Both the position numbers and the translations under genes were made by a program. 64,000 nucleotides of DNA from sequence record OZ195776.1, one strand, 5' to 3'. Under the pieces are notes generated by a model. The model made no database searches. It was not told the DNA's origin and saw only the letters and a list, made by a program, of their open reading frames with translations. Position 1 is the stretch's first letter. The number at the start of each line of letters is the position of its first letter. Shown here piece after piece: positions 18,620 through 32,941 of this stretch.

Positions 18620-19012
18620 CTAATCAGCAAATGGGTCCGACAAGTCATGTGCCAAACGAACGCGGTGCTTCTTGGAGACTCGGAATCCAGCTCGGTCAAT
18701 GACTTCATCCAAGTTAATCCAATTCTTCATATTAAGCTCGAGATACTTTCCACTGCCGTGCCACGTACGATCACATACGATACGCGTACCAATGGACTGG
18801 TATTTTCCAGCAATAGTAGCGTACATCGTTTCTTCTTTCGTCTCGTACATAAAATCCCCATGTATAACGCGTATTCTAACGCGTGAGAACGATTCTACAC
18901 CGAGGAACTCGTTGGAGATGAATCCGTTTACAGATAATTTCATAAACGTCTGAGAATCCGGCATATCGCGGATTCTCTTCATCTTTTCAATTGATACTCG
19001 TTTGTTTATCAT
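18620..19012 (-). CDS. hypothetical protein
   Basis: 130 aa, coupled to Sir2. Confidence 0.65.
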   Translation of the reverse strand: MINKRVSIEKMKRIRDMPDSQTFMKLSVNGFISNEFLGVESFSRVRIRVIHGDFMYETKEETMYATIAGKYQSIGTRIVCDRTWHGSGKYLELNMKNWINLDEVIDRAGFRVSKKHRVRLAHDLSDPFAD

Positions 19013-19815: not shown

Positions 19816-20499
19816 CTATGTGTATTGTTGCATTAACTCATCACGAAACGCTTGTTTACGTTTCTCTTCACGCTTTTGTTGTTTGGCAGCTTGCGCTTGT
19901 CGTTGTCTACATACCACAAACCACAACGCATTCGCAATCACTCGATTCTCAGTCTCGGTAAAACAAGAAGGAATGGTCATTTCAAAACGACCAATGTGAT
20001 TATTGTAAACAGCCACGAATTTAACTTGCGTGTCTTTATCTACAATAACACATGAACTGCCGTGTCTAAAGCCCTCAGTTTGGGTCGCAATGTGAAAACG
20101 TGTTGGTGTATTGATCATTTTATCGATTATAGCAATAGCAGGTTCTTCAACATCGTATTTGAAATCATCAGCAGTCATCATACGGTATTTTGCATAATCT
20201 GCACGCATTTCGATCATTTTCTTGGCATTAATTGCCCAAGGGTTCTCGTAACAATTACCAATGCGACGATGGTTACGGTAGCCAGGACTAAAGCCAGAAT
20301 TGTCAGGTTGCGTAACGACGTACATCTTGTAAATCGAAGCAGGACTGTTCAAGAAGGTTTGGAAGTATTTGTGTTTGGGATTTTGGCTTATAAAGCCGCC
20401 AATGGTTCCATCACCGTAAGCGTGGACATTGATTTGAGGTTTGCAAAGAGGGGTGTGAAGAATACTATGGATGTATTCTTGTGCTGTGGTAGTTGACAT
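19816..20499 (-). CDS. hypothetical protein
   Basis: 227 aa; AGGAG SD; promoter-like TTGACC-17-TAATAT upstream. Confidence 0.7.
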   Translation of the reverse strand: MSTTTAQEYIHSILHTPLCKPQINVHAYGDGTIGGFISQNPKHKYFQTFLNSPASIYKMYVVTQPDNSGFSPGYRNHRRIGNCYENPWAINAKKMIEMRADYAKYRMMTADDFKYDVEEPAIAIIDKMINTPTRFHIATQTEGFRHGSSCVIVDKDTQVKFVAVYNNHIGRFEMTIPSCFTETENRVIANALWFVVCRQRQAQAAKQQKREEKRKQAFRDELMQQYT

Positions 20500-20557
20500 A
20501 ACGTTCTCCTTTGATTGATACGGAGATATTAAGCCAACTACGTTTTCAGGTCAACGA

Positions 20558-20761
20558 TTAATCCATTCGGGTTAATTCGTGATCGCGAACTTTCTGACCA
20601 TTACGAGTGTTTTCGTATAATCGATCTGCGCGGATGTAAGACCAGTCGTAAGGCGAACCATCACGGTGAGCAGCAAGTCGGTAACATACCGATGCAATGT
20701 TGCGTCCACGATGATCCTTATCCAACTGGAATAGATTTTTGACAACCTTTAGTAAATTCAT
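20558..20761 (-). CDS. hypothetical protein
   Basis: GGAG SD; 67 aa. Confidence 0.55.
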   Translation of the reverse strand: MNLLKVVKNLFQLDKDHRGRNIASVCYRLAAHRDGSPYDWSYIRADRLYENTRNGQKVRDHELTRMD

Positions 20762-20821
20762 GCTAGTTCTCCAATTAATAAACTCCGGATAAAGAAAAAC
20801 CCGCTCGAGGCGGGTTATTTA

Positions 20822-20934: not shown

Positions 20935-21282
20935 TTAATCGTAGTACCACCAGAAACCGATGTACTTTTTAGCTTTATCGTAGAAGTCCCAGTTATTTTC
21001 AGGATCTTTCCAGAATCGAGCTTGTTGCTGTTGCCAATGTGAACGTCTCGCTTTACGAGTGTACCACTTGACTGCAGCGGATTCTTTGTAGTTGTGGTCT
21101 GTTTCTTCAACCAAGCACCAAGAGTCATACTCATCTTCTGTGTTAATCCAATTAGCGTAACGCTCTGGATCCTCATCGTAACGATTGCGAAGCCCGTAAT
21201 CCATACGGTTGATGTATTCGTCTAATGCTCCGTGACGACGCCACGGACGGTTACCTTTTTGCTTACGATATGTTTTTGACAC
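20935..21282 (-). CDS. hypothetical protein
   Basis: GAGG SD; 115 aa, Trp/Tyr rich. Confidence 0.65.
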   Translation of the reverse strand: MSKTYRKQKGNRPWRRHGALDEYINRMDYGLRNRYDEDPERYANWINTEDEYDSWCLVEETDHNYKESAAVKWYTRKARRSHWQQQQARFWKDPENNWDFYDKAKKYIGFWWYYD

Positions 21283-21341
21283 TTTTGATTTCCTCTATTG
21301 ATGACATTCAATAGAAAAAATCGTTCTCAAAATAATTCATT

Positions 21342-21605
21342 TTAGCTACCTGTAAACAAGAATGATATCAAACTACCCAAGTCTCCAAAAGACGTGGCAC
21401 CAAAAGAAAATCCTGATATCCACATTGAAACTGTGAATAAAAGTGAAACAAAATGAACACCGAGTGCTCCAAGTTCCATCATTCTTACCGTGTTGCTACT
21501 GTTGTATGCTAACGTCAATGCGTTGATTATCAAGATTCCGTACCAAGGTACATGAACGCCTATCATCCAACCAATGACAACAAAAAAGATGCTTACGACC
21601 ACCAT
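21342..21605 (-). CDS. small membrane protein
   Basis: Three hydrophobic segments. Confidence 0.5.
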   Translation of the reverse strand: MVVVSIFFVVIGWMIGVHVPWYGILIINALTLAYNSSNTVRMMELGALGVHFVSLLFTVSMWISGFSFGATSFGDLGSLISFLFTGS

Positions 21606-21897
21606 TATATAAATTCCTCACAATGAATTTGTGGATGCCACTACCATCCTGCACATATTGAATCTTACATTCTGACGTGTGCACGTGCCGCGTGGTTCTC
21701 TTTCGATAATTTATACACCACTGAGACTCATAAGAGGTGTTTGACTGCATACCCAATTCCATCAGTCGCTACTGGCACCAAAACTTCCTTCAAACCAGCT
21801 CCCCTGCAGGTTGATCAACTCTATCTCACGACAGTATTTGACCTATACTTCTTTAACGTCAGTGCAGACCCGACGATTACACAGTTAAGTGATAATG

Positions 21898-21973
21898 TGG
21901 TGGAAGTGGTGGGACTCGAACCCACGACCGACGGCTTATCGGGCCGGCGCTCTACCAACTGAGCTACACTTCC
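21898..21973 (-). tRNA. tRNA-Ile(GAT)
   Basis: Cloverleaf with CCA; unusual C33. Confidence 0.9.
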
Positions 21974-21980
21974 ATTAATA

Positions 21981-22056
21981 TGGTGCACCCTACTGGAATC
22001 GAACCAGTGACGCGAAGATCTTCAATCTACCGCTCTACCATCTGAGCTAAGGGTGC
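21981..22056 (-). tRNA. tRNA-Phe(GAA)
   Basis: Cloverleaf with CCA. Confidence 0.95.
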
Positions 22057-22265
22057 ATATTGTATTCGTTTATATCAAAATCGGTTAACGACTCAACGAG
22101 AATAGTTGCTTTGTAACCTACGTACAATTCATCTCCGTACCACAAGTCGGTGCATTCCTCTACAATATAAGAAGAACCAAGAACGATGTGCTTGATGTTA
22201 AAGAATTGCAAATTGCGTTCAAGAACTGTTTTAGCTCTATCTGTCAATGGTTTGATTTTGATCAT
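22047..22265 (-). CDS. hypothetical protein within the tRNA array
   Basis: AGGAG SD; 72 aa. Confidence 0.5.
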   Translation of the reverse strand: MIKIKPLTDRAKTVLERNLQFFNIKHIVLGSSYIVEECTDLWYGDELYVGYKATILVESLTDFDINEYNMHP

Positions 22266-22296
22266 AACATTCTCCTATTTGGAGAATATTTATAAT

Positions 22297-22372
22297 TGGA
22301 GCGAATGATGAGGTTCGAACTCACGACCTGTTGCTTGGCAAGCAACCGCTCTACCAACTGAGCTACATTCGC
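22297..22372 (-). tRNA. tRNA-Gly(GCC)
   Basis: Cloverleaf with CCA. Confidence 0.95.
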
Positions 22373-22833
22373 ATTTGAACTTTTCGGTTCCCGTGTATAT
22401 TTTGTATGTGGCACGGACCACAACCCCTACGCCTTGGTGCGTCAATGGAGCTAGTATTCGTTATCAAGTGCTGCTTCCATGTGCTACTCCTTATAGGTTT
22501 TCCAAACCCTGATTTCGCACTCTCGGCAGTTTCTACGTCAACTTTTCTTCCGATATCCTTTTGAAACACTCACTATCCAGTTGGATTCGCATTGCTAAGT
22601 GAGGTCCGCATCCTTAATCGATTTGTCGTACACCTGAAAATTTTAATTGCTTTGATCGAACAAATTCTTTATTGCTTTCAAATTAGTCAAATCAACTTGA
22701 AGTTGCCGTAGCATTACTTCGTTCTTTGTTGATTTAATCTGCCTCTCCAAATCCTTTATCAGAAATCCAATAGATGACTTGGTGATATTGAAATAGTTTA
22801 TATTGAAACTCGCATCTGTTAAACCTTTTTGTT

Positions 22834-22910
22834 TGGTGGATAGTGCTGGATTTGAACCAGCGACCAACGGATTATGATTCCGACGAACTACCAGACTGTT
22901 CTAACTATCC
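22834..22910 (-). tRNA. tRNA-Met(CAT), probably elongator
   Basis: Cloverleaf; anticodon loop AT-CAT-AA. Confidence 0.85.
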
Positions 22911-22912
22911 AA

Positions 22913-22988
22913 TGGTGGAGAATATCGGAATCGAACCGATGACCTCCTCCTTGCAAGGGAGGCGCTCTACCAACTGAGCTAAGACCCC
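22913..22988 (-). tRNA. tRNA-Ala(TGC)
   Basis: Cloverleaf with G3:U70 and CCA. Confidence 0.9.
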
Positions 22989-22998
22989 ATTTATTAAA

Positions 22999-23080
22999 TT
23001 CAAGATTGTCTATTGCAGGTGTCCGGACTTACTACTGCATAAAGCTGCTGCCTTCGTTACCTGGTTCAACAATCTTGGAA
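22999..23080 (-). ncRNA. putative structured small RNA
   Basis: CAAGATTGT...ACAATCTTG closing stem and internal CAGGT/ACCTG pairing. Confidence 0.45.
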
Positions 23081-23082
23081 AC

Positions 23083-23160
23083 TGGCAGGAGATGTGGGAC
23101 TCGAACCCAACAACCTTCGGATTTGGAATCCGCTGCTCTACCAATTAGAGCTAATCTCCT
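23083..23160 (-). tRNA. tRNA-Trp(CCA)
   Basis: Cloverleaf with CCA. Confidence 0.9.
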
Positions 23161-23214
23161 ATTGATGATTTTATGTTTTTAACGTGGAGATAATCAACAA
23201 CTCTCACAATCAAT

Positions 23215-23290
23215 TGGGGTGACCTGCGGGGTTCGAACCCGCGACCGCCGGAATCACAATCCAGAGCTCTACCAACTGAGCTAAGGCCAC
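23215..23290 (-). tRNA. tRNA-His(GTG)
   Basis: Cloverleaf with C73; the genomic -1 base is T, not G. Confidence 0.9.
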
Positions 23291-23534
23291 ATCTAAAAAC
23301 ACTCAACGAATGCGCTTAGATGTGATTGCCTCACATCGAATAGTTTCTCGGACTATTCCAAGACTCTGTTACAAGTCACCGCCCTATTCTATCTGTTGTT
23401 ATACTCGTGAAGGGTACCGAGTGGTCTTTTGCAAAACTATCAAGAGTTTAGCTTCGTGCAAGGCTCTTGGACCTTCTACCGATTAGCGATCGGTATTTCC
23501 AGCAATAGAACTAATCGCTCTACTCGTAAAGTTT

Positions 23535-23645
23535 TGAAGAATGATGGGAATTGAACCCACTTCGGATAACAGCATTGTAAAGAGGCTATCGATTATTTCC
23601 TACCGGCTTGTTTCAGACCTGCATTTCCTCTTTGCGAGCATTCTT
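23535..23645 (-). ncRNA. tRNA-like RNA (acceptor stem plus T arm, no anticodon arm)
   Basis: AAGAATG/CATTCTT stem; GTGGG-TTCAATT-CCCAT T arm. Confidence 0.5.
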
Positions 23646-23651
23646 TCAAAT

Positions 23652-23742
23652 TGGCGGAGAGACAGAGACTCGAACTCTGACGACGCTATTAACATCGAAC
23701 GGCTTTCAAGGCCGCGGCAGTACCAATTATGCTTACCTCTCC
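23652..23742 (-). tRNA. tRNA-Ser(TGA)
   Basis: Type II cloverleaf. Confidence 0.95.
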
Positions 23743-23748
23743 AGAATA

Positions 23749-23833
23749 TGGTGCGCAGGGTGGGACTCGAACCCACACGCCCTAAGGCCACGGAATCTAA
23801 ATCCGCGTTGTCTACCAATTCCAGCACCTGCGC
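23749..23833 (-). tRNA. tRNA-Leu(TAG)
   Basis: Type II cloverleaf. Confidence 0.95.
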
Positions 23834-24253
23834 ATGTTATTTCTACACCAGACAATAGGACTTACTTCGACTTATTCCAACGTCTAACGTATTAGCTTCA
23901 CAAGGTCGTCACCTATCATATTCGGATTCACCGTGGTTGCCACCTATTCGATATAACGTCATCGAAAACGACCTGGTATTCACAAGGGCATAATGCCTAT
24001 TTCCAAGTAAACCAACTTCGTCGTAATCATGCTAAAGAGCAAGAATCGAGGTAGTTACCTAATCAACACTCCGTAGAGCTGTTTCCAAGTATTGAAAACG
24101 CATCAAAGAGGCGTGGCCTATCATTCTTAGTTAGGTTTTATTGTTTGCTGGACACTGTCTTCTGTGCAGAACTTTTAATGTGGTTGTTTTTACGATTTCA
24201 AGAGAGCCACACTTCCTTGAGTAACCGTCCTAATCAAGTTAGGAAGGATAATA

Positions 24254-24330
24254 TGGCGGATCCTCAGGGATTTGAACCCCGAACCTTGCGCTTAACAGGC
24301 GCCCGCTCTAACCATTGGAGCTAAGGATCC
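24254..24330 (-). tRNA. tRNA-Asn(GTT)
   Basis: Cloverleaf with CCA. Confidence 0.95.
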
Positions 24331-24336
24331 GTAATA

Positions 24337-24413
24337 TGGCGCACCGAGTAGGACTCGAACCTACCTCAATCCTCGTTCGTAGCGAGGTGCCAATCCAGAT
24401 TGACTACCGGTGC
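24337..24413 (-). tRNA. tRNA-Arg(ACG)
   Basis: Cloverleaf with CCA. Confidence 0.9.
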
Positions 24414-24420
24414 AAAAATT

Positions 24421-24497
24421 TGGCGGGTGTGACGGGATTTGAACCCGCTACCTACGACGTGACAGGCCGTTATGCAAACCAACTACACCTCACACCC
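24421..24497 (-). tRNA. tRNA-Asp(GTC)
   Basis: Cloverleaf with CCA. Confidence 0.95.
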
Positions 24498-24498
24498 T

Positions 24499-24714
24499 TT
24501 AAGAAACTACATGTACAATACCTAGGATTGGAAGAACTATAAACCAACAAAGCAAAATTAAGAAGAACAATCCTGTACCAATGATACCAGGTAATTGCTT
24601 TAGACGATATCCCCAAAGTCCATACTTCTTGATCTGTTTCTGACGTTCTAACTCTGCTCGACGAGCGATATTCTCGGAGCTAAAGTAGTTCAGTATATCT
24701 CTTGTATCAAACAT
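24499..24714 (-). CDS. small membrane protein
   Basis: C-terminal TM helix; weak SD. Confidence 0.45.
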   Translation of the reverse strand: MFDTRDILNYFSSENIARRAELERQKQIKKYGLWGYRLKQLPGIIGTGLFFLILLCWFIVLPILGIVHVVS

Positions 24715-24729
24715 ATAATTCTCATAAAC

Positions 24730-24807
24730 TGGTCGGAACTGTAGGATTCGAACCTACGACCCCTTGCTCCCAAAGCAAGCGCTGCTACCAAACTGAGCTA
24801 AGTTCCG
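24730..24807 (-). tRNA. tRNA-Pro(TGG)
   Basis: Cloverleaf with CCA. Confidence 0.95.
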
Positions 24808-24816
24808 AAAATAACT

Positions 24817-24876
24817 GGATACGTTTGTCTTTTTTTTCAAATAAAAAATTAGATTTAATGTTTGCTGAATGTATCC
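24817..24876 (-). ncRNA. minimal motif RNA
   Basis: GGATAC-ATTCAGCAAAC...GTATCC end-to-end stem. Confidence 0.55.
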
Positions 24877-24882
24877 ATAAAC

Positions 24883-24958
24883 TGGCTGGCGTAGGAGGAC
24901 TCGAACCTCCGACCATCGGTATCAAAAACCGATGCGCTACCAACTGCGCTATACGCCA
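24883..24958 (-). tRNA. tRNA-Gln(TTG)
   Basis: Cloverleaf with CCA. Confidence 0.95.
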
Positions 24959-24965
24959 ATAAAAC

Positions 24966-25042
24966 TGGTGGGTGTAGAAGGACTCGAACCTTCGACCACT
25001 CGATTAAAAGTCGAGTGCTCTAACCAACTGAGCTACACACCC
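24966..25042 (-). tRNA. tRNA-Lys(TTT)
   Basis: Cloverleaf with CCA. Confidence 0.95.
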
Positions 25043-25114
25043 AAATCTTGTAACTGAGATAAGCATCTCATGTTTCCATTTGAAAGTAAACCAGTTATTT
25101 GATTTACTTTGAAA

Positions 25115-25191
25115 TGGAAGCGGGAGGTGGATTTGAACCACCGACCTTTGGGTTATGAGCCCAATAAGCTACCAGACTGCTCCATCCCGCT
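25115..25191 (-). tRNA. initiator tRNA-fMet(CAT)
   Basis: Three G:C pairs closing the anticodon stem; A1:U72. Confidence 0.9.
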
Positions 25192-25197
25192 ACAATT

Positions 25198-25282
25198 TGG
25201 TGGGAACACATACCTCCGTGGGCTTATCAACAATACTTCACTGACTCGTAAAGTTGATTACCTTCTCCGAAGAGAACTCCCA
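25198..25282 (-). ncRNA. CCA-ended non-tRNA small RNA
   Basis: TGGGA...TTCCCA-CCA ends, no cloverleaf. Confidence 0.45.
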
Positions 25283-25287
25283 TAATT

Positions 25288-25365
25288 TGGTTCTCGAGAC
25301 GGGAATCGAACCCGCTAATCCCACCTTGAAAGGGTGGTGACTCAACCAGATGGTCTGCCCGAGAA
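25288..25365 (-). tRNA. tRNA-Glu(TTC)
   Basis: Cloverleaf with CCA. Confidence 0.95.
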
Positions 25366-25370
25366 TTGTT

Positions 25371-25456
25371 TGGTGGGCCATCCTGGACTCGAACCAGGAA
25401 CTCCGTGAGGAGGACGGATTTACAATCCGCTGCAATCGCCATTCTGCCAACGACCC
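25371..25456 (-). tRNA. tRNA-Tyr(GTA)
   Basis: Type II cloverleaf. Confidence 0.95.
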
Positions 25457-25481
25457 AATGTATTTTTAACTAATGTTATCC

Positions 25482-25556
25482 TGGTGCTCTGTGACGGATT
25501 CGAACCGCCGTCACCTCATTACAAGTGAGGTGCTAAACCAACTCAGCTAACAGAGC
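25482..25556 (-). tRNA. tRNA-Thr(TGT)
   Basis: Cloverleaf with CCA. Confidence 0.95.
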
Positions 25557-25571
25557 AACGTATTTGTAGTT

Positions 25572-25600
25572 ATTATCCAGCATTCCAGCTGGTTGTAAAC
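25572..25600 (-). promoter_or_regulatory. T4-type early promoter
   Basis: GTTTAC-17 nt (ending TG)-GATAAT just upstream of tRNA-Thr. Confidence 0.65.
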
Positions 25601-25608
25601 TTGAAAGC

Positions 25609-25665
25609 AAAAAAAAAGCCGCTTTAATAAGCGGCTTCTATAAATCTTTGGAATATAGAAGACGC
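25609..25665 (-). terminator. terminator with overlapping antiterminator (attenuator)
   Basis: AAGCCGC-8-GCGGCTT-T tract; competing stem GCGTCTTCTATA/TATAGAAGCCGC. Confidence 0.8.
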
Positions 25666-25667
25666 AG

Positions 25668-25724
25668 TTAGCTCGCAGGATTTGTTTCGTAAATGTAAAA
25701 TTTTTGAAGTGAATGTGCGAACAT
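25668..25724 (-). CDS. leader peptide MFAHSLQKFYIYETNPAS
   Basis: AAGGA SD 7 nt before ATG; stop 2 nt before the antiterminator 5' arm. Confidence 0.6.
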   Translation of the reverse strand: MFAHSLQKFYIYETNPAS

Positions 25725-25846
25725 AATTGATTCCTTTGGGAAAAATAAACTTTTTTTCTTTCTCTTACTTTATATATAACAGCTTACTCAAGGATTCGGC
25801 TGTTTTAAACAAAAAATTTGAATTTTTTTCAAATTAATTTAGAATG

Positions 25847-25938
25847 TGGCGGAAGGAGAGGGACTCGAACCCTCAGACCGGCTATTAACCAGTCGATTCC
25901 TTAGCAGGGAACTCCGATACCAATTATGGGATCCTTCC
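25847..25938 (-). tRNA. tRNA-Ser(GCT)
   Basis: Type II cloverleaf. Confidence 0.95.
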
Positions 25939-25948
25939 GTTGTATATC

Positions 25949-26033
25949 TGGTACGGGTAGCGGGAGTCGAACCCGCACCTCCTAAGAGAGTGGATTTTAA
26001 GTCCACAGCATATGCCAATTTCGCCATACCCGT
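25949..26033 (-). tRNA. tRNA-Leu(TAA)
   Basis: Type II cloverleaf. Confidence 0.95.
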
Positions 26034-26040
26034 ATAAATT

Positions 26041-26127
26041 TGGTGCCAGTGGCCGGACTCGAACCGGCACGGTATTTCTACCACAGGATTTTGAATCCTG
26101 CGCGCCTACCAATTACGCCACACTGGC
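26041..26127 (-). tRNA. tRNA-Leu(CAA)
   Basis: Type II cloverleaf. Confidence 0.95.
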
Positions 26128-26128
26128 T

Positions 26129-26206
26129 TGGAGCTGCGTGAGGGATTCGAACCCCCGAAGCTTGGATTTGCAATCCAGTACATTAGACCAACTCTGCCAA
26201 CACAGC
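26129..26206 (-). tRNA. tRNA-Cys(GCA)
   Basis: Cloverleaf with CCA. Confidence 0.95.
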
Positions 26207-26293
26207 ATTTTTCAAGTTCACACTTTTGATTAGTACGGTAGTGACTCTCCGTAATGTGGTGACCCGCCGTGGACTCGAACCACGCCCTATCGA

Positions 26294-26770
26294 TTATTCT
26301 GAACGCTCTGTGCGTCTGCGTCTATACGTTGATGTTTGTGAATGACAATTTGGACACAACCAGGATAGGTTTTCCTTCCGATTATCGTTGCTAATTCCAT
26401 TAACATGTTCCAGCTCCAATGTAAGAGGTTTCCCATTCCAAGTATCCGGAATTCCACACTCATCACAGTGGTTTCGATAGAACCCTAATCGAATTGATAT
26501 TTGTCGGGCGCTGCTACGAGGTGCAGTGCAATTCTCTACAAAGAACGATTCTTCGGTGTGTGAAAATTTATTACGCTTAAACGTCTTTTTAACATCAAAG
26601 TGTTCAGTAGACACGTCGTACTTATCACACAGCACTTTCAATCGATTTATATTGTATGTACAGACCGTTATACCAACACCACGGCACACATCACTCCAAC
26701 AAAACGAATCACTTGCTACGGTGATTAGCTGTTCTAACGTATAGTGCTTAAAATCTTTATTGCTTTTCAT
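26294..26770 (-). mobile_element. HNH homing endonuclease inside the tRNA anticodon loop
   Basis: CDECG...LELEHVNGISNDNRKENLSWLCPNCHSQT. Confidence 0.9.
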
Positions 26771-26775
26771 TTTCT

Positions 26776-26814
26776 ACTCCTACTGCTGATGTGTTATTTA
26801 TACAGCAGTAGGAG
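26776..26814 (-). promoter_or_regulatory. late promoter in an RBS-sequestering hairpin
   Basis: CTCCTACTGCTG-TATAAATA-ACACAT-CAGCAGTAGGAG. Confidence 0.85.
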
Positions 26815-26863
26815 ATAATGAGTCGATTGCTCTCAACCAGGTGAGCTATCGGGCCACATAAAC

Positions 26864-26940
26864 TGGAGCAAGTGACGGGACTCGAACCCGCGACCACCGA
26901 CTTGGAAGGACGGAACTCTACCAACTGAGTTTACACTTGC
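26864..26940 (-). tRNA. tRNA-Gly(TCC)
   Basis: Cloverleaf with CCA. Confidence 0.95.
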
Positions 26941-26946
26941 AAAACT

Positions 26947-27051
26947 GGATGTACAAAATAGCTCACCATTACCTCAACCCAGAGTAACGTTAGTCTTTTA
27001 CGACTTGGCTCCTGATATGTAATTTTAGGTTATTGTTTGCGGTAGACATCC
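26947..27051 (-). ncRNA. stand-alone motif RNA
   Basis: GGATGT-CTACCG-CAAA...TTTG-T-ACATCC end-to-end stem with internal loop. Confidence 0.6.
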
Positions 27052-27079
27052 AAGGTCGAACCTTGACGAATCAAGATCT

Positions 27080-27409
27080 TTAAAACTGTTCACCTTTCGG
27101 CTCTTCGGTATTTAGAAGAGTAACCAAATCGTTTAGCGCATTATACTTGTTTATTTCAAGTTTTGTCGCTGGACGAAGGATTTCAGTGCTTTCCCAAGAA
27201 TGAGATGTGTAGTGTTCAACATCATGAACCCAATCCCAATTGTGTAGATATGCACTATCCGGAAGTTTAATGGAATGTTTGAAGTTGGTTTTCAACTTAC
27301 GTAAAAGAGTATCTGTGCTAACTGAGCCAGAGTAAACCGCTTTTGCCAATTGTTCATCGGTAATTCGCAATTTTCTTGTAACCAGTTCGCTACCTTCAAT
27401 CATGTTCAT
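27080..27409 (-). CDS. hypothetical protein, paralog of 27406-27717
   Basis: Shared (I/V)TDEQL, W..D and LR(P/K)AT..EI motifs. Confidence 0.75.
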   Translation of the reverse strand: MNMIEGSELVTRKLRITDEQLAKAVYSGSVSTDTLLRKLKTNFKHSIKLPDSAYLHNWDWVHDVEHYTSHSWESTEILRPATKLEINKYNALNDLVTLLNTEEPKGEQF

Positions 27410-27717
27410 TTCTTCATCCCGTATTCGTGACGTAGAACATTGATTGCATCATAGATCGCAATCTCACCCATTGTTGCTTTGCGAAGAAACTTCTTCTCGA
27501 TCCAGCGACCGGTACCATCCATATCTTGGTGGTAATGCCAATTGCCGTGTTCTAAGAATGCTTCTTTACGAAGCTCACCTTGCTTGCGCAGGTTCAATCC
27601 AAGTTTGTCAATCAGAACCTCAGATGGTATAGAACCGTCTGAGAACGCTTCTAAGAGCTGTTCGTCTGTAACTTGAATCTCACAAGGAACAAGACGAGTA
27701 CCTTTAATAGTATTCAT
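27406..27717 (-). CDS. hypothetical protein, paralog of 27080-27409
   Basis: GAGG SD; same motifs as neighbour. Confidence 0.75.
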   Translation of the reverse strand: MNTIKGTRLVPCEIQVTDEQLLEAFSDGSIPSEVLIDKLGLNLRKQGELRKEAFLEHGNWHYHQDMDGTGRWIEKKFLRKATMGEIAIYDAINVLRHEYGMKK

Positions 27718-27736
27718 TATATCCTCTTTAAATGAG

Positions 27737-27812
27737 TGGCACGCCTGGAGGGATTCGAACCCACGACCCGAAACTTAGAAGGTTCCTGCTCTTCCAACTG
27801 AGCTACAAGCGC
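27737..27812 (-). tRNA. tRNA-Arg(TCT)
   Basis: Cloverleaf with CCA. Confidence 0.95.
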
Positions 27813-27813
27813 A

Positions 27814-28248
27814 TTATTTCAACGTAAATTTCAAATTGCGATAATTGTACTTAGAGCCGTTATTACGACAAGTGTTAGTCCAGAAGTCACTCCAATCAAT
27901 TTTGACGGGACATTTATCTGATCCAACGCGAGTACAGAACACATCCAAGTGCGGATATTTCAATTGCAGGTTAGCTGCCGTTTGGCGAACTGCCAGTGCA
28001 TGCTCAGTACGTCTTTTAGCAAGTTCTCTACGAGAGTACGTGTTTTGCCAAAAATGACTACGCCAAATATTAACACGCTTCTCATCCCAACCCATGCTAA
28101 ACGAATGTTCAACATAACCAGATAATTTACCAGTTTTAGGGTCACGAGCGAATATTGCGTAACAACGATGTCGAGTGAAATCGGTTCGTTCATATTTGTC
28201 GCAGTTAATAACGTTACCTTTCTTGGTGGTACGAGAGTGTTTAATCAT
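27814..28248 (-). CDS. hypothetical basic protein
   Basis: GAGG SD before MIKHSR. Confidence 0.6.
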   Translation of the reverse strand: MIKHSRTTKKGNVINCDKYERTDFTRHRCYAIFARDPKTGKLSGYVEHSFSMGWDEKRVNIWRSHFWQNTYSRRELAKRRTEHALAVRQTAANLQLKYPHLDVFCTRVGSDKCPVKIDWSDFWTNTCRNNGSKYNYRNLKFTLK

Positions 28249-28426
28249 CGGACACCTCGAAAGATTTAAAGCGTTTATCGAACTCACTTAGACAAGTATC
28301 AGCCCAAGACGTTGCTACGTCTTTTTCTCTGCAATCATTTGCATTTGCTGTTGATGTCCACGCTCGAACCCACACATCACGACGTTGTTCTTCGTGACGA
28401 GCTTCTGCTTTTGTAAATTTTGGCAT
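28241..28426 (-). CDS. hypothetical protein
   Basis: GAGG SD before MPKFTK. Confidence 0.65.
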   Translation of the reverse strand: MPKFTKAEARHEEQRRDVWVRAWTSTANANDCREKDVATSWADTCLSEFDKRFKSFEVSDD

Positions 28427-28439
28427 TTTAATTTCCTCT

Positions 28440-28711
28440 TGATGCCCCACCGTGGATTCGAACCACGCAGTCCATTCATTTTCCTAATACGCAAGGGGCT
28501 TGTTAGATTTAGAACCTTAACGTCAATAGAAACTACAATTCATCGCTTTCCTGGTGTTAATAACTAACACTGCTTTCACACCAGTAATTACTCAACTCTG
28601 TATCTCAATGAAACAAGTTCGTCGGTGAAATTGTCGTTAATTAGACGACGCATTCTCGGAACAAGTTAGTCTGAGCATGACCATGTCAACGGTCTCCAGT
28701 TAGAATGGGGC
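28440..28711 (-). ncRNA. tmRNA-like RNA with non-Ala acceptor stem
   Basis: GCCCCAT/GTGGGGC stem, T arm, P2-like pairings and an internal 17-codon frame (I)NDNFTDELVSLRYRVE. Confidence 0.5.
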
Positions 28712-28733
28712 TTTGTTTAATACATAATGTAAT

Positions 28734-28852
28734 CGGCCGGTGTAGGACTCGAACCTACGACCACGAGCTTAACGGGCTATTGAGTTTAGTGTGCGGTATC
28801 GATTCTTGACAGAATCATTTCATACGTGCTCTACCAACTGAGCTAACCGGCC
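28734..28852 (-). ncRNA. tRNA-shaped RNA with motif insert replacing the anticodon loop
   Basis: Intact acceptor/D/T arms; insert GATTCT-GTCA-AGAATC-GATACCGCACAC; no CCA. Confidence 0.75.
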
Positions 28853-28862
28853 ATAATTTATT

Positions 28863-29270
28863 TTACTCTGATTTAACATCCAAAGTAAACAGTTTTGCAT
28901 TGCTTTCTTTCATCGGTTGAACGCCGACTATTTCTTCTGCAAGTAACGATGGGACAACTTGCTTCGGAATTTTGACGGTAACGCCACTTTCCTTTGCTTG
29001 CTCGCGAAGTTCTTTTGAACGTTCACGTAACATTGCAAGATGTTCTTCACGTTTTGTTACTATGTCATCAAGGTGCTCGTCGATAGTACCGATTTCGTAC
29101 TTCTCACCGTAAGCAAAGGCAGTATGCCAGTGAATCTTTTTAAATTCAGCAATCTGCTTGATGTCTTTGATGACGCGTACTTCGTCGTAAACCCAACCAC
29201 AGTTGATACATTCAATTGCGATTTGATCTCCGTTTTCATCGAAGAATAAAGCGTTACTTGGTAAACTCAT
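28863..29270 (-). CDS. hypothetical protein with a gp23-like C-terminal motif
   Basis: PSLLAEEIVGVQPM resembles the major capsid protein P-x-L-I-A-x-x-I-x-GVQPM motif. Confidence 0.65.
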   Translation of the reverse strand: MSLPSNALFFDENGDQIAIECINCGWVYDEVRVIKDIKQIAEFKKIHWHTAFAYGEKYEIGTIDEHLDDIVTKREEHLAMLRERSKELREQAKESGVTVKIPKQVVPSLLAEEIVGVQPMKESNAKLFTLDVKSE

Positions 29271-29296
29271 AATATAATCTCACGAAATAAAACAAT

Positions 29297-29426
29297 TGGT
29301 AGAGGGTGCAGGATTCGAACCTGCGCCACGGAATTTAAGAGTTTCAATGCAATTTTGGTTGCCGCAACTATTCTTTCCAGAATAATGTTTGTGCTACGTG
29401 TGCTTGCCGTTTTACACCAACCCTCT
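29297..29426 (-). ncRNA. tRNA-shaped RNA with motif insert
   Basis: AGAGGGT/ACCCTCT-A-CCA; insert TATTCT-GGAA-AGAATA-GTTGCGGCAACC. Confidence 0.7.
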
Positions 29427-29525
29427 ACGAATTGTTCTAGTTGATAGATTCTGAGTTCATCTTTCACACTCAAGGTTCTATCGGACCTGCGGCTAAGTGA
29501 CTAAGCTTCGCCGTTAAAATAAACA

Positions 29526-29666
29526 GGATGTACAAATCTTCTGGTGCGTTTTCCAATTCGCTACCTCCCCGTCGATACATTATTGGTGGGGAGGGTTGGG
29601 ATTCGAACCCAACTCATCACAAAAGTGAACCAGTTCTACTCGATTAATATTACGCTGTAGACATCC
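29526..29666 (-). ncRNA. circularly permuted tRNA-like RNA (YrlA-type topology)
   Basis: GGATGT-CTACAGCG...T arm-CCTCCCC-ACCA-linker-GGGGAGG-D arm...ACATCC. Confidence 0.7.
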
Positions 29667-29672
29667 TTAAAT

Positions 29673-29750
29673 TGGCCAGTAGTAAGGGACTCGAACCCAA
29701 GCACGGACTCCACGAGGGCGACTGCTTTACCTAACATAAGCTAAACTACT
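29673..29750 (-). pseudogene. degenerate tRNA with unpaired anticodon stem
   Basis: Acceptor, D and T arms and CCA present; anticodon arm does not pair. Confidence 0.55.
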
Positions 29751-29758
29751 TTCAAATT

Positions 29759-29877
29759 TGGCGCGTGTGACAGGACTCGAACCTGTGACCTCCGGCGGGA
29801 TTAATGTAATTGCTGTAACGATTCATTACTGAATCCATTTATTAGGCCGGCATTCTAACCAACTGAATTACACACGC
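29759..29877 (-). ncRNA. tRNA-shaped RNA with motif insert (Asp-like D arm)
   Basis: GCGTGTG/CACACGC-G-CCA; insert GATTCA-GTAA-TGAATC-GTTACAGCAATT. Confidence 0.75.
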
Positions 29878-29884
29878 GATGTTA

Positions 29885-30028
29885 AAAACAATTTGAGCAG
29901 CGTACAGGATTCGAACCTGTGTTACCTCCTGGAAATGGAATTAGCGTTAGTTGCTGAAAGCATCTTTACCAAGATACATTGCTTTTAGGTGTCCTAGGCC
30001 ACTAGACGAACGCTGCTCAAATTGTTTT
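29885..30028 (-). ncRNA. tRNA-shaped RNA with motif insert (Glu-like D arm) and extended acceptor stem
   Basis: Insert GTATCTT-GGTA-AAGATGC-TTTCAGCAACT; ~18-bp terminal inverted repeat; no CCA. Confidence 0.75.
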
Positions 30029-30034
30029 TATTAA

Positions 30035-30177
30035 GTCTTATTGCCGGCGGGGCTGGATTCGAACCAGCGACCTCGTGCTCCCTATGCAATTAATAATTGG
30101 TTGCGGTACCCAATCTTTTCAGATTGGTTTATTAATACGCGCGCTAACCTGACTGCGCTACCCGCCGGCAATAAGAC
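30035..30177 (-). ncRNA. tRNA-shaped RNA with motif insert and extended acceptor stem
   Basis: Insert CCAATCT-GAAA-AGATTGG-GTACCGCAACC; ~17-bp terminal inverted repeat; no CCA. Confidence 0.75.
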
Positions 30178-30246
30178 CTAATTGTGTTCATATCTTCCCA
30201 AAGAGACAGCAACGATATGACTGGGCTGCTTAATCAACTTGCGGTT

Positions 30247-30276
30247 ACTATATAATCAAATGATTCAGAAGTAAAC
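30247..30276 (-). promoter_or_regulatory. T4-type early promoter heading the ncRNA/tRNA array
   Basis: GTTTAC-16/17 nt-TATATAGT. Confidence 0.55.
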
Positions 30277-30292
30277 CGTTTTTTACATCTTC

Positions 30293-30478
30293 CTAAAAGA
30301 GGCGGTAACGATGTAACAGGACCGCTTTTGCAACCGTAGTTGCTTCAACAGGGCTTACTATCTGATAGTTAATTTCAAAAGTAAACCGCTTTTTTCTACA
30401 TCCGAGATGGATCAAGAATGATGCCAGCTTCGGATACTCCACAACGTTGAGCTTCCTGCATATTTTGCAATTGGGCAA
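30293..30478 (-). CDS. possible small hypothetical protein
   Basis: 61-aa ORF; start uncertain. Confidence 0.35.
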   Translation of the reverse strand: MPNCKICRKLNVVEYPKLASFLIHLGCRKKRFTFEINYQIVSPVEATTVAKAVLLHRYRLF

Positions 30479-30656
30479 CAGCGTGTTGAAGTTCTGTTAG
30501 AAGTTTTTCGTACATACTCTGATTGTCTTTTAGTAGCGCAATCTGATCCGACTGCATGCCAACAATGTAAGTCAACAGAATGACGTTTTCCGGATCGGTA
30601 AGTGATTCCGGATCTTCGTGGTACTTAGCAAGTACCAATTGAGTTTCATTATCCAT
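30396..30656 (-). CDS. hypothetical coiled-coil protein
   Basis: Start reassigned to MDNETQ. Confidence 0.55.
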   Translation of the reverse strand: MDNETQLVLAKYHEDPESLTDPENVILLTYIVGMQSDQIALLKDNQSMYEKLLTELQHAVAQLQNMQEAQRCGVSEAGIILDPSRM

Positions 30657-30732
30657 AGTAAATCTCATTTGACAACAATTAATTTGTGATTTAATTATAC
30701 GCAAAGAAAAAGCGGGATAAACCCGCTTCTTT

Positions 30733-31023
30733 TTAGTGATCTTCCGAACCGTATTCCCAATCGTCATACAATTCATCAGCACCCTTTTCGTTTCTTCCTA
30801 CCCAGATATCTTCCGGTTCCAGAACATTCACATCAGAGCCATTTACAACGCCCCAGAACACGATATACTCGCCGTTACGTTTGATTGCTTTGAATACATA
30901 ACTGTTCTTCGGAACTGCCTTAGAATCGAATCTACGGCGTTCTACGACCGTTTCGATAGCATGAGCAAGATTAACGAATCTCCAGTTCATAGTTGCTTCT
31001 GAATAGAAGTCCATAAAACCCAT
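30733..31023 (-). CDS. hypothetical protein
   Basis: GGAG SD; followed by a terminator at about 30707-30735. Confidence 0.6.
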   Translation of the reverse strand: MGFMDFYSEATMNWRFVNLAHAIETVVERRRFDSKAVPKNSYVFKAIKRNGEYIVFWGVVNGSDVNVLEPEDIWVGRNEKGADELYDDWEYGSEDH

Positions 31024-31025
31024 CG

Positions 31026-31454
31026 TTATCTCCTTGTAAGCAAGAAATTACCGTTGCTGAATGAATACGCATATCCAATATCGCCAGCAAATCGTCTAGT
31101 TAAACGCTCATAGAGTTTCTTACGTGACGGTTCGTTATCTGCCGCCTCGAAGTACAAATACATTGGTTGGTGATCGTGTAGCACCTCACGTACACCAGCT
31201 AACACTGTTCCCAATACAGTCAACTCACTGCCCGTACCAGTAATACTCATATCTTGACCACGATCTCCAATTAACGCGAAGCTAATCGTCATCATGTCTT
31301 TCTGATATTCATACGAGGTTGTTAGTACGTACGTTTCTCCACCCACTTCAAACTCACCGTGTGATTGGTCGTGGGTATAGTTGTTGCTGTGATTCCAACG
31401 AATTGGTACAGATCTCTTGAGCGCCTCAACCATGTATGTTTGAAGCGTCTTCAT
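31026..31454 (-). CDS. putative internal head protein, paralog 1
   Basis: MKTLQTYMVEA capsid-targeting-like N-terminus; SRKKLYERL motif. Confidence 0.75.
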   Translation of the reverse strand: MKTLQTYMVEALKRSVPIRWNHSNNYTHDQSHGEFEVGGETYVLTTSYEYQKDMMTISFALIGDRGQDMSITGTGSELTVLGTVLAGVREVLHDHQPMYLYFEAADNEPSRKKLYERLTRRFAGDIGYAYSFSNGNFLLTRR

Positions 31455-31455
31455 A

Positions 31456-32157
31456 TTACCATTCCTCGAATGTAGCGTAAGCGTCATCGATATCGTCAGT
31501 TACGTACGAATCATCTTGATCAAGAATAATGTGACGTTTGCTTGTACCACGAACCACACCTGAGATAACAACAACATCGAAGCCGTCTTGCGACATGCCA
31601 AGAATTACCATTTCTTTACCAGGTTTCAACCAACGGAACTCACGAACTTCGAATGGGAACATCAAATCGTTTGAGTTATCGATTGCCAATTGCACTTCTT
31701 CTTCTGTCCATTCTGCATCTTTGCGTTGTGCACGAACAAGAGTGTATTTGTTGCGATCGATTGTAAATGTGTAACCAGCGTCTTCTGCAAAGCGCTTAAC
31801 AAGACGGTCGTACAATTTCTTACGGCTATCTCGTTTGTCGTCATGTTCGTAAGCAGTGAAGAAAATCTTCGTCGGGCTCTTGCGATCAATGTACTCTTTC
31901 ACAGCTTTTAAAACTGAGGTGATAACTTTTAGCGTTTCGCTTGGTGAACCAGTTACGTTATTCGCAGAGACATTCATTCTGCCGCGTTCATTAACAGAAC
32001 CGTAAGCTACTTCGGTGTATCCACCAAAACCAGCAAATTCAATCACATACTGCGTTGAACCAACACGGAAGTTCGCGTCGTTGTCGTTTTTCCATTGAAT
32101 TGGTGCGGCTTTCGCTAAGTCAAGCGCTTCCACCATAAATTGTTTAAAGTCGTTCAT
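31456..32157 (-). CDS. putative internal head protein, paralog 2
   Basis: MNDFKQFMVEA; SRKKLYDRL motif. Confidence 0.75.
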   Translation of the reverse strand: MNDFKQFMVEALDLAKAAPIQWKNDNDANFRVGSTQYVIEFAGFGGYTEVAYGSVNERGRMNVSANNVTGSPSETLKVITSVLKAVKEYIDRKSPTKIFFTAYEHDDKRDSRKKLYDRLVKRFAEDAGYTFTIDRNKYTLVRAQRKDAEWTEEEVQLAIDNSNDLMFPFEVREFRWLKPGKEMVILGMSQDGFDVVVISGVVRGTSKRHIILDQDDSYVTDDIDDAYATFEEW

Positions 32158-32161
32158 TTCA

Positions 32162-32941
32162 TTACCTATCGTATTCGATGCGATGCTTATCAAGCACCTT
32201 GTAAGTTTCTGGATTTTTGAAAGATGTGCGCATATGTTTGACGTAACCGTTGGAGTAACCGTTAGCAGCCATCATCTCTCCAATCATTTTATCCAACGTG
32301 TCGACGTAATCGCCAAGAGGACCGATATGAGATAGATCAACCACACCAGTAGTTGGTTCGTCTTCCATTGGATGAATGTTTACCACAACACCACCTGCGC
32401 CATTCGAGAACATACCAACACGTTTTTGGTCATTCTGATAGTTGATATCGTACAACACGCCTTTTGGAGCGTCTTTAACCAAATCATATTGCATTTTGTT
32501 CTTGAACGTGGCTGTTGATAACGAGTAACCGTATTGTTTACCCATTTTCTTAAACAACATCGAATACAGACGTTCGCGCTTCTTACGAAACTCTTCGTTT
32601 GAATCAGGATATGCCCAAGTTTGAATGCGAGTTGGTGAACACCAATCCATTGCTTGTTTTGCTGCTTCAATAACTGTCGCGAAAACTTGCAAAGCGTTAT
32701 CGGTGTCTGTTTGATCGTTTGTCCAATCTCGCTTAGATGCATCGAACGCCATGAAATGAATTTCCATGAGGTCGCTGGTCTTTTCCTCTGTCACGCCGCG
32801 ATGAATAACGATCGCTTTGTACATCACCTTACCAACTTGAAATATCCCCTCAAGTGGTCGATCGGAACGAACAGCATTGCTTTTCCAAGTAATCCGAGCT
32901 GGTTTATCAAACGCTTCAGTTAAGAAGGTTCTGAATTCCAT
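32162..32941 (-). CDS. putative internal head protein, paralog 3
   Basis: MEFRTFLTEA; KRERLYSML motif. Confidence 0.75.
   Translation of the reverse strand: MEFRTFLTEAFDKPARITWKSNAVRSDRPLEGIFQVGKVMYKAIVIHRGVTEEKTSDLMEIHFMAFDASKRDWTNDQTDTDNALQVFATVIEAAKQAMDWCSPTRIQTWAYPDSNEEFRKKRERLYSMLFKKMGKQYGYSLSTATFKNKMQYDLVKDAPKGVLYDINYQNDQKRVGMFSNGAGGVVVNIHPMEDEPTTGVVDLSHIGPLGDYVDTLDKMIGEMMAANGYSNGYVKHMRTSFKNPETYKVLDKHRIEYDR

Follow-up and report, generated by a model that had tools for sequence, protein, structure and literature searches.

Leader-peptide attenuators (trp, his, leu, thr, ilv, pheA and pheST) combine a short open reading frame (ORF), led by a Shine-Dalgarno (SD) sequence, with mutually exclusive 2:3 and 3:4 helices; the ORF stops a few nucleotides (nt) before the partner of the terminator 5' arm, and the terminator is more stable than the antiterminator. 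Here we describe a locus that has these properties in common with them on the - strand of Vibrio phage D479 (OZ195776.1, 257,764 bp; source: seawater and oysters; host: Vibrio crassostreae). The last 64 kb of this genome form the window analysed, and positions are those of the window unless the record is named (window 25300-26000 is record 219064-219764, 100% identity). The element consists of an 18-codon ORF and a hairpin that competes with an intrinsic terminator, and it lies ahead of a block of 19 transfer RNA (tRNA) genes. We tentatively read it as a translation-sensitive terminator ahead of the tRNA block, a reading to which we give somewhat less than an even chance. The D479 element differs from the leader-peptide attenuators in that it has no tandem regulatory codons, that a promoter stands before the regulated genes, that these genes are tRNAs and that it is phage-borne.

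The closest functional analogy to the model is found in the general-stalling leaders of the antibiotic-resistance genes hflXr, msrD and vmlR, which were found by Term-seq (PMC6310831, 10.1101/2021.11.29.470318). Their ORFs also have no special codon runs, and any stalled or absent ribosome favours read-through. These leaders come from cellular organisms, most of them Gram-positive, and regulate genes for proteins; the D479 element, whose architecture is compatible with such a leader, has a short antiterminator and a second promoter and is known from sequence. A different kind of element, the promoter-early stem-loop (PeSL) of T4-like phages, was reportedly the subject of work by Arbiol in 2010. 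PeSLs occur in T4-like phages including nt-1 and KVP40 and are regarded as modules for recombination and insulation that lead into an SD with its gene (Comeau 2014, PMC4122927). The D479 locus resembles them in having a stem-loop directly upstream of a sigma-70-like promoter in a plastic region, beside a rearrangement relative to KVP40, and perhaps in that the stem sequence recurs. Unlike in a PeSL, the D479 promoter precedes tRNA-Thr and not an SD with a protein gene, and the conserved upstream ORF and the competing hairpin fall outside the PeSL description.

The tRNA cluster of T4 has a middle promoter just upstream of tRNA-Gln, according to Broida and Abelson (1985) as cited in PMC2330249. 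T4 and D479 have in common a dedicated promoter directly before the first tRNA. In T4 only a MotA-box promoter (ATGCTTTAA-12-TATTAT) lies between trna.2 and tRNA-Gln, and that interval contains no short ORF, hairpin or terminator. Current interest in the tRNA arrays of large phages centres on codon usage, the decay of host tRNAs and the question of how phages escape anticodon nucleases. We know of no cis-regulatory device that controls the transcription of phage tRNAs, and our literature search turned up no leader or attenuator described as preceding phage tRNA genes.

Competing hairpins downstream of the leader ORF

A preliminary description of this locus, made from the letters of the window, had listed an SD AAGGA, an 18-codon ORF, segments 2 and 3, and GCGGCTT with a T tract on the - strand, and all of them are where it placed them (Table 1). 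The geometry is real, with the stop codon 2 nt before a segment that is able to pair with the GC core of the terminator 5' arm. Segments 2 and 3 pair at 11 of 12 positions and form a hairpin of -11.3 kcal/mol (ViennaRNA). The terminator proved longer and stronger than had been stated: the hairpin at 25639-25614 has an 11-bp stem (AGAAGCCGCUU/AAGCGGCUUUU), a 4-nt loop, nine T and an energy of -15.3 kcal/mol (ViennaRNA). It is the sole strong - strand terminator in 21000-31000. The 2:3 and terminator helices are mutually exclusive, the contested bases being G8-C12 of segment 3, and in stepwise folding 2:3 is the minimum-energy fold until the terminator 3' arm becomes available.

Dinucleotide shuffles of the upstream 35-70 nt match the 2:3 pairing gain in 0.1-2% of trials, and over all tests of this pairing against shuffles P = 0.001-0.026. 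Among the 15 canonical terminators of the window this one alone has a competitor hairpin (gain -10.6 kcal/mol, against 0 to -3.8 elsewhere). Genome-wide, with the genome read in five pieces, there are 106 terminator-like hairpins; four have an equally strong competitor, and the present one alone combines it with an SD-led ORF whose end lies at the competitor. SD plus ATG sites number just 94 per 128 kb of strand, half of which begin genes of at least 60 amino acids (aa), and SD-led ATG ORFs of 10-40 codons number 24 per 128 kb of strand. The rarity figures for the combination of terminator, competitor and SD-led ORF are post hoc and argue against accident. A chance co-occurrence of mini-ORF, hairpin and terminator in an A+T-rich spacer is in our estimate very improbable. 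It gains from the post hoc selection of the site by a reader scanning many windows and from the four equally strong competitors, and it loses from the rarity of short SD-led ORFs, from the combination of all features at one site only, and from the homology of the locus, with controls, to the conserved module described below.

The preliminary description had also placed an early-type promoter just past the terminator, with the caveat that attenuation would control only upstream-initiated read-through. Both statements hold: the promoter, P2, is TTTACA-16-GATAAT at 25599-25572, and the relatives have a conserved promoter-like stretch in the corresponding place. The early promoter consensus of T4-like phages is TTTACW..TAYWAT (PMC4122927). 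Since P2 lies past the terminator, attenuation could modulate only upstream-initiated, probably late, transcripts. Terminator and P2 together form a PeSL-like composite, and under the pattern used two terminators in the D479 genome are followed by an early-type promoter. A MotA-type middle promoter was considered for P2 and for the leader and was rejected due to wrong spacing. No sigma-70 promoter for the leader ORF was found in a promoter scan. The stem AAGCCGC/GCGGCTT is present at four D479 terminators (window 1804/1824, 17859/17880 and 25615; record position 121525). Twice it forms a bidirectional terminator, and at record 121525 it is followed by TTGACA-17-TAATAT.

Table 1. Features of the D479 module and its surroundings (window positions)
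Feature	Sequence or motif	Position	Strand	Remarks
Late-promoter motif	TATAAATA	26795..26802	-	Ahead of HNH endonuclease gene
tRNA-Ser(GCT)		25847..25938	-	Last of upstream sub-block Cys-Leu-Leu-Ser; ARAGORN and Rfam tRNA
A+T-rich hairpin	AATTTGAA-AAAAA-TTCAAATT, then TTTTTG	25815..25835	-	Matches stem-loop preceding the module in KVP40-like phages
Conserved box	CCGAATCCTTGA	25788..25799	-	CGAAWCSTYGA in relatives; high posterior probability in nhmmer alignment
Box aligned with relatives' TGTTATAAGTA box	TGTTATATATAAAGTA	25766..25781	-	Relatives: TATAAGTA; TATAAATA in nt-1; late-promoter type
Shine-Dalgarno	AAGGA	25732..25736	-	7 nt ahead of ATG
18-codon ORF	MFAHSLQKFYIYETNPAS + stop TAA (25670-25668)	25668..25724	-	ATG at 25724
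Segment 2	GCGTCTTCTATA	25654..25665	-	Begins 2 nt past stop codon
Segment 3	TATAGAAGCCGC	25631..25642	-	Partner of segment 2, or part of terminator 5' arm (25639-25629)
Intrinsic terminator	Stem AGAAGCCGCTT/AAGCGGCTTTT, loop ATTA, nine T	25606..25639	-	
Promoter P2	(G)TTTACA-16-GATAAT	25572..25599	-	T4-early type; 14 nt past terminator stem-loop (25639-25614), precedes tRNA-Thr
tRNA-Thr		25556-25482	-	First gene of 19-tRNA run; ARAGORN
19-tRNA block	Thr(TGT) to Ile(GAT)	21898..25556	-	Begins ~50 nt past T tract

A related module in KVP40-like phages

The tRNA regions of KVP40 and VS1 were put through the same terminator pipeline and yielded a conserved terminator (GAGGACGC-loop-GCGTCCTTTTTT) with an upstream competitor, about 80-90 nt ahead of the first main-block tRNA. 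The 380-nt region around this KVP40-type terminator is present in 50 records with identity down to 72%. Eight phages were aligned (KVP40, VS1, VH7D, D484, F86, 1.081.O, nt-1 and QD01). In these relatives the order is stem-loop, TGTTATAAGTAC box (TATAAATA in nt-1), ORF, hairpin AGTATA..TATACT, terminator, promoter-like stretch and tRNA, the first tRNA after the module being tRNA-Pro (tRNA-Arg in D484). In every case, D479 included, the module precedes the tRNA that opens the block (Pro, Arg or Thr) by 50-108 nt.

An nhmmer profile made from the eight phages was searched against the whole D479 genome on both strands. It gave one significant match, at window 25815-25668 (-), with 19.8 bits and E = 4e-5; as controls, the reversed genome reached 6.5 bits, and none of 20 genomes that had been shuffled in 100-nt blocks exceeded 9.7 bits. 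The alignment spans the A+T-rich hairpin, the CGAATC.T.GA box, TGTTATA, an A-rich 5' untranslated region, the ATG and CACATTCA. The D479 A+T-rich hairpin lies inside the nhmmer envelope and aligns to GTTGAAATTTTTTTCAAT of VS1 in a single-sequence search, and the reciprocal single-sequence search from D479 ranks the VS1 module first, weakly (E = 0.14). The distance from the start of TGTTATA to the ATG is 57 nt in D479 and 59 nt in KVP40. Further likeness was noted by eye in the peptide ends (F-VYLANPCA in relatives, FYIYETNPAS in D479) and in the loop (UAUAUUCCAA in D479, UAUAUUUCCAA in 1.081.O), and a hand alignment of the inner hairpins gives UCUAUA/UAUAGA in D479 against AGUAUA/UAUACU in relatives, with two compensatory pairs. 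Judged by these alignments, the D479 locus is a version of the module conserved at the head of the main tRNA block of KVP40-like phages, and its 18-codon ORF is probably a shortened homolog of their 37-38-codon ORF (M.HS..., [VI]Y..NP). A scan of IMG/VR for TAGTCC..AGTATA..ATACT returned just KVP40 and VH7D themselves.

In the eight aligned phages the late-type box lies 52-62 nt ahead of the invariant ATG. All eight TATAA[AG]TA sites examined in KVP40 and the window lie 29-56 nt ahead of a same-strand SD-ATG, so the box appears to behave as a T4-type late promoter. The D479 box matches TATAA[AG]TA imperfectly. Motifs CTAAATAG and ATAAATAG occur 25-35 nt before the SD-ATG of structural genes (window 12288, 5652, 58443 and 13921, just past terminators) and look like a local version of the T4 late promoter.

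A second explanation is nearly as likely as a translation-sensitive terminator, namely a small late micro-protein gene (37 aa) with its own late promoter and an ordinary terminator, in a cassette bounded by PeSL-type elements. We consider it a serious if doubtful contender. D479 would retain this gene as a truncated relic, the terminator would insulate P2 from upstream transcription, and the hairpin overlap would be non-regulatory or would stabilise the 3' end. Such a gene would account for the TATAA[AG]TA boxes found at like distances before genes elsewhere, for the synonymous changes in the VYLANP motif of the relatives, and for the recurrence both of the AAGCCGC/GCGGCTT stem within D479 and of terminator plus early-promoter composites in T4-like genomes including KVP40 and nt-1 (PMC4122927). 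A relic in D479 would fit the box TATATAAAGTA, which no longer fits the late consensus, and the lack of the C-terminal QKWD part from the D479 ORF. It fits less well that D479 retains a good SD, the ATG and a 28-nt distance from stop codon to terminator despite the loss of half the ORF, that the peptides have no PHROG match, and that the pairing of a stop-adjacent segment with the terminator arm is found in both lineages with different sequences. Codon positions that vary near-equally and a between-lineage aa identity of about 35% also indicate weak protein constraint.

Possible translation and constraint of the leader ORF

Neither the ATG nor the TAG stop varies among the eight phages, all of which have an open frame of 37-38 codons; the D484 ORF has three indels, each of 3 nt. 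Synonymous changes are found in conserved R, L and V codons of the relatives' ORF, and the D479 SD is at ideal spacing from the ATG. Variation in the relatives' ORF is even across codon positions (32/25/30), which fits a translated ORF with weak protein constraint. A kept frame, a weak sequence constraint and an overlaid structure together would show the pattern of a regulatory leader; a micro-protein or a small RNA would also be compatible with it.

In the RNAalifold prediction the two ends of the relatives' ORF fold onto each other, with a few double changes and an unfavourable covariation term. This fold speaks for a third explanation, a structured non-coding RNA with a transcript of about 150-200 nt that ends at the terminator and an open frame that is incidental. 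AUUCG and UACAC in the 5' part of the ORF pair with CGAAU and GUGUA in the 3' part, three pairs being changed on both sides; the ends of the D479 ORF also fold together (GUUCGCA:UGCGAGC; region z = -3.3), nucleotides are conserved without a third-position bias, and the tRNA region of T4 has the stable RNAs rnaC and rnaD, of unknown function. We think a non-coding RNA unlikely given the invariant ATG and stop, the three in-frame indels of D484, the ideally spaced SD of D479, the absence of any Rfam family at threshold and the value of the RNAalifold covariation term (+1.14, unfavourable).

The preliminary description had gone further and taken the leader for a codon sampler whose many amino acids sense the loss of any tRNA, for example by host anticodon nuclease cleavage, and so turn on the tRNA block. 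This is a subset of the attenuator idea that we hold to be quite improbable. It draws on the same geometry, and most leader codons are readable by phage tRNAs. The D479 leader has 14 different residues and no run of regulatory codons; for 18 codons 11.6 +/- 1.4 distinct residues are expected (P(>=14) = 0.07), and the absence of both Cys and Val has P = 0.26, so the composition that had seemed meaningful is within chance. Not all codons are served by the downstream block as had been stated, the last one (AGC) being read by the upstream-block tRNA-Ser(GCT). The homologous ORFs of the relatives differ in composition and length (37-38 codons, with a partly conserved VYLANP), the tRNA block has its own promoter, and nothing links the element to nucleases.

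Several genomes seem to call an ORF on the wrong strand over the module. Opposite-strand coding sequences lie over or beside it in D479 (VPHD479_0378, window 25727-25837, +), KVP40 (KVP40.0315, KVP40 18767-18931, +), D484 (VPHD484_0383, L018 261-515, -) and QD01 (QD01_340, L022 126-494, -). Those annotated over the module were considered as conserved genes and rejected, being 54, 84 and 122 aa long, reading across the terminator and lacking a counterpart in D479. Because the lengths differ and the frames cross the terminator, these are probably mis-calls. The sense 37-codon ORF is annotated in F86 alone.

Alternative pairing in D479 and its relatives

In all eight relatives the G of the stop codon and the next three bases (GUCC; UAG|UCC) can pair with GGAC of the terminator 5' arm GAGGACGC, enclosing the inner hairpin. 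The energies are -8.8 to -12.7 kcal/mol for the alternative fold, -9.9 to -12.8 for the terminator by itself and -11.3 to -17.2 for hairpin and terminator combined. When the 12 nt counted from the stop codon are shuffled, 0.4-6% of trials come up to this pairing (P = 0.004-0.06). In D479 the post-stop GCG.C pairs with G.CGC of its own terminator arm GAAGCCGC (P = 0.002-0.026). Stop codon and terminator arm are 28 nt apart in D479 and 29 nt apart in the relatives, even though the D479 ORF has half the length. In this comparison of D479 with the KVP40 group, which is a single contrast, the predicted pairing topology is the same and the letters are different.

Translation-dependent termination as a possible control

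If the locus is a translation-sensitive terminator, the module would begin with a stem-loop and a late-type promoter box, continue with a structured leader RNA that has a short translated ORF, the hairpin and the intrinsic terminator, and end with the sigma-70-type P2 and the first tRNA. P2 would drive the tRNA block early in infection. Upstream-initiated transcripts, in D479 including late ones from TATAAATA at 26802, would have to pass the terminator. A ribosome at the stop codon of the ORF would cover segment 2, the terminator would form and transcription would end; with the ribosome absent, lagging or stalled earlier, segment 2 would pair with the GC core of the terminator 5' arm and allow more (partial) read-through into the tRNA genes, on top of P2. 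The output of tRNA would thereby be linked to translation capacity. Ribosome footprints indicate that a ribosome with the stop codon in the A site shields roughly 5-10 nt beyond the stop, so one positioned there would cover the GC part of segment 2. The sequence features, the competing folds with their calculated energies, the homology and the conserved presence and position of the ORF are established; translation of the ORF, the promoter classes and the effect of ribosomes on termination are what we infer in this scheme. The effect would be largest if P2 is off after the early period, a shut-off suggested by the biology of AsiA in T4. Because there is no clear 1:2 pause helix, an untranslated D479 RNA would default to read-through and not to termination.

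Extended to the group, the proposal would be that in KVP40-like vibriophages, D479 among them, the tRNA operon begins with a conserved attenuator that senses translation. Late transcripts would stop there when ribosomes keep pace and read on when translation lags, and tRNA supply would be tuned late, after the early sigma-70 promoters are shut off. We regard this wider claim as possible and rather unlikely.

Several observations weigh against translation-sensitive termination. In stepwise folding the GC core of the terminator displaces the base of 2:3 once the 3' arm is free, and in D479 and relatives alike the terminator is thermodynamically favoured over its competitor. No partner for segment 2 (a segment 1 or pause hairpin) was found within the D479 ORF. 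In the KVP40-like phages the competitor is just 4 bp closing over the hairpin; RNAalifold finds there a weak conserved GGAU:GUCC helix that is broken in KVP40 itself, and no clear pause helix. In the model's favour, the expectation that related phages would have a leader ORF and alternative pairing before their tRNA blocks was borne out in outline. The within-group covariation expected with it is absent; since the key segments are invariant in the KVP40 group, this is silent either way. A covariance model of hairpin plus terminator (R1) gives the D479 site 21.1 bits, fourth among the terminators of the genome, and is unspecific; no independent confirmation of homology was obtained for the 3' half of the module. 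Antisense to the ORF, the frame with the same wobble positions is likewise open in 8 of 8 phages. The promoter, conserved in relatives as a promoter-like stretch, separates the terminator from the tRNAs, and because it follows the terminator the tRNA block is independent of read-through. In the relatives a late box at its distance from the ATG together with a terminator has the look of an ordinary small late gene. Our searches found no transcriptome of D479 or of KVP40-like phages.

Searches for further relatives

Megablast and blastn against 50,697 phage records found no relatives of the spacer. Exact and degenerate DNA patterns gave no matches in IMG/VR and JGI metagenomes for the terminator 27-mer, the tRNA-Thr 27-mer, a tRNA-Leu 36-mer shared with the Logan contig L004 or the back-translated leader peptide. 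This 2.7-kb contig was reached through the 157-aa ORF at 27814-28287 (62% protein identity). Its order is as in D479, Arg(tct)-ORF-Gly(tcc)-...-Cys-Leu-Leu-Ser, and it ends within tRNA-Ser, about 60 nt short of the module. A profile search of IMG/VR with the 157-aa ORF gave just non-syntenic jumbo phages. T5-like Vibrio phages (Ceto) have tRNAs in common with D479 and not their order. In Rfam 15 no family reached its gathering threshold; BjrC1505 (26.7 bits, threshold 50) and suhB/mmgR (21.5 bits, threshold 41) were both driven by the terminator. The 37-aa peptides match no PHROG family.

Two neighbouring ORFs much alike in size (109 and 103 aa; 27080-27717) and a 71-aa membrane-like ORF (24499-24714), all on the - strand, lie within the tRNA region. 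A search of 5.8 billion proteins gave no homolog of either the 109-aa or the 71-aa ORF, and the 103-aa ORF has no match among PHROG families, the sole search made for it.

Genomic context of the module

Matches to PHROG families (long tail fibre, baseplate wedge, fibritin and a gp15-like sheath stabiliser) identify D479 as a T4-type phage. Its gp15 has 48-56% identity to that of KVP40, VS1, nt-1 and the oyster-farm Schizotequatroviruses; because the identity is just that high, D479 would be a distant member of the KVP40-like group without a close sequenced relative. The tRNA calls confirmed the layout given in the preliminary description, with tRNA-Cys upstream, a 19-tRNA block downstream and no tRNA-Val in D479 (window 21898-27812); KVP40 and VS1 have tRNA-Val(tac). 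The order Cys-Leu-Leu-Ser of the upstream sub-block is also present in KVP40, VS1 and contig L004, and transcripts leaving tRNA-Ser(GCT) enter the module. The position of Arg(tct)...Cys-Leu-Leu-Ser differs, being at the far end of the cluster in KVP40 and upstream of the module in D479. The break of this sub-block rearrangement falls at the module (window 21898-27812), and despite the rearranged tRNA order the module still directly precedes a promoter and tRNA block. Late transcripts that start at the TATAAATA motif at 26802 probably run through Cys-Leu-Leu-Ser into the module, and a terminator scan found no strong - strand terminator between it and 25639.

The HNH endonuclease gene downstream of this motif (26294-26770, -) is located between tRNA-Gly(tcc) and tRNA-Cys, where L004 has a tRNA-Met. 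Its SD is inside the hairpin CTCCTACTGCTG..CAGCAGTAGGAG, which includes the late promoter, a T4-style layout in which the gene is translatable from late transcripts only. Two long tRNA-like genes at 29762-29877 and 30044-30167 (-) have 116 and 124 nt and score 59.6 and 44.4 bits with Rfam tRNA, and ARAGORN reports a 'tRNA-???' with the 4-base anticodon gcaa at 29895-29982 (-). Similar elements of 113-124 nt at the start of the KVP40 cluster are annotated as 'pseudo-tRNAs'. The tRNA-Glu(ttc) at 25288-25364 (-) has 94-96% identity to tRNA-Glu of T5-like Vibrio phages (Ceto, Achelous, Brizo and others), a match far closer than any other in the region, which suggests an exchange of tRNAs between unrelated vibriophages. 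Three tandem ORFs of 153, 245 and 259 aa (31026-32941, -), all with matches to PHROG 6387 / 16075 (function unknown), make up a local array of paralogs, with the tRNA region on one side and a 57B-like gene on the other. At the other end of the cluster, KVP40 (12843-13137, -) and VS1 (20494-20790, +) have about 290 nt between the last tRNA, Ser(gct), and the final cluster terminator AACCTGCC..GGCAGGTTTTTTT; at the counterpart end of the T4 tRNA cluster are the stable RNAs rnaC and rnaD.

Significance

If the module is a small late gene instead of a translation-sensitive terminator, annotations would still be corrected with regard to the wrong-strand ORFs over it. If translation-sensitive termination is true, the module would be the first candidate for a feedback between translation capacity and phage tRNA output, one that spans several genera and always heads a tRNA block. 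A known kind of control, the ribosome-stalling leader, would then be found in a new setting, the tRNA genes of phages.

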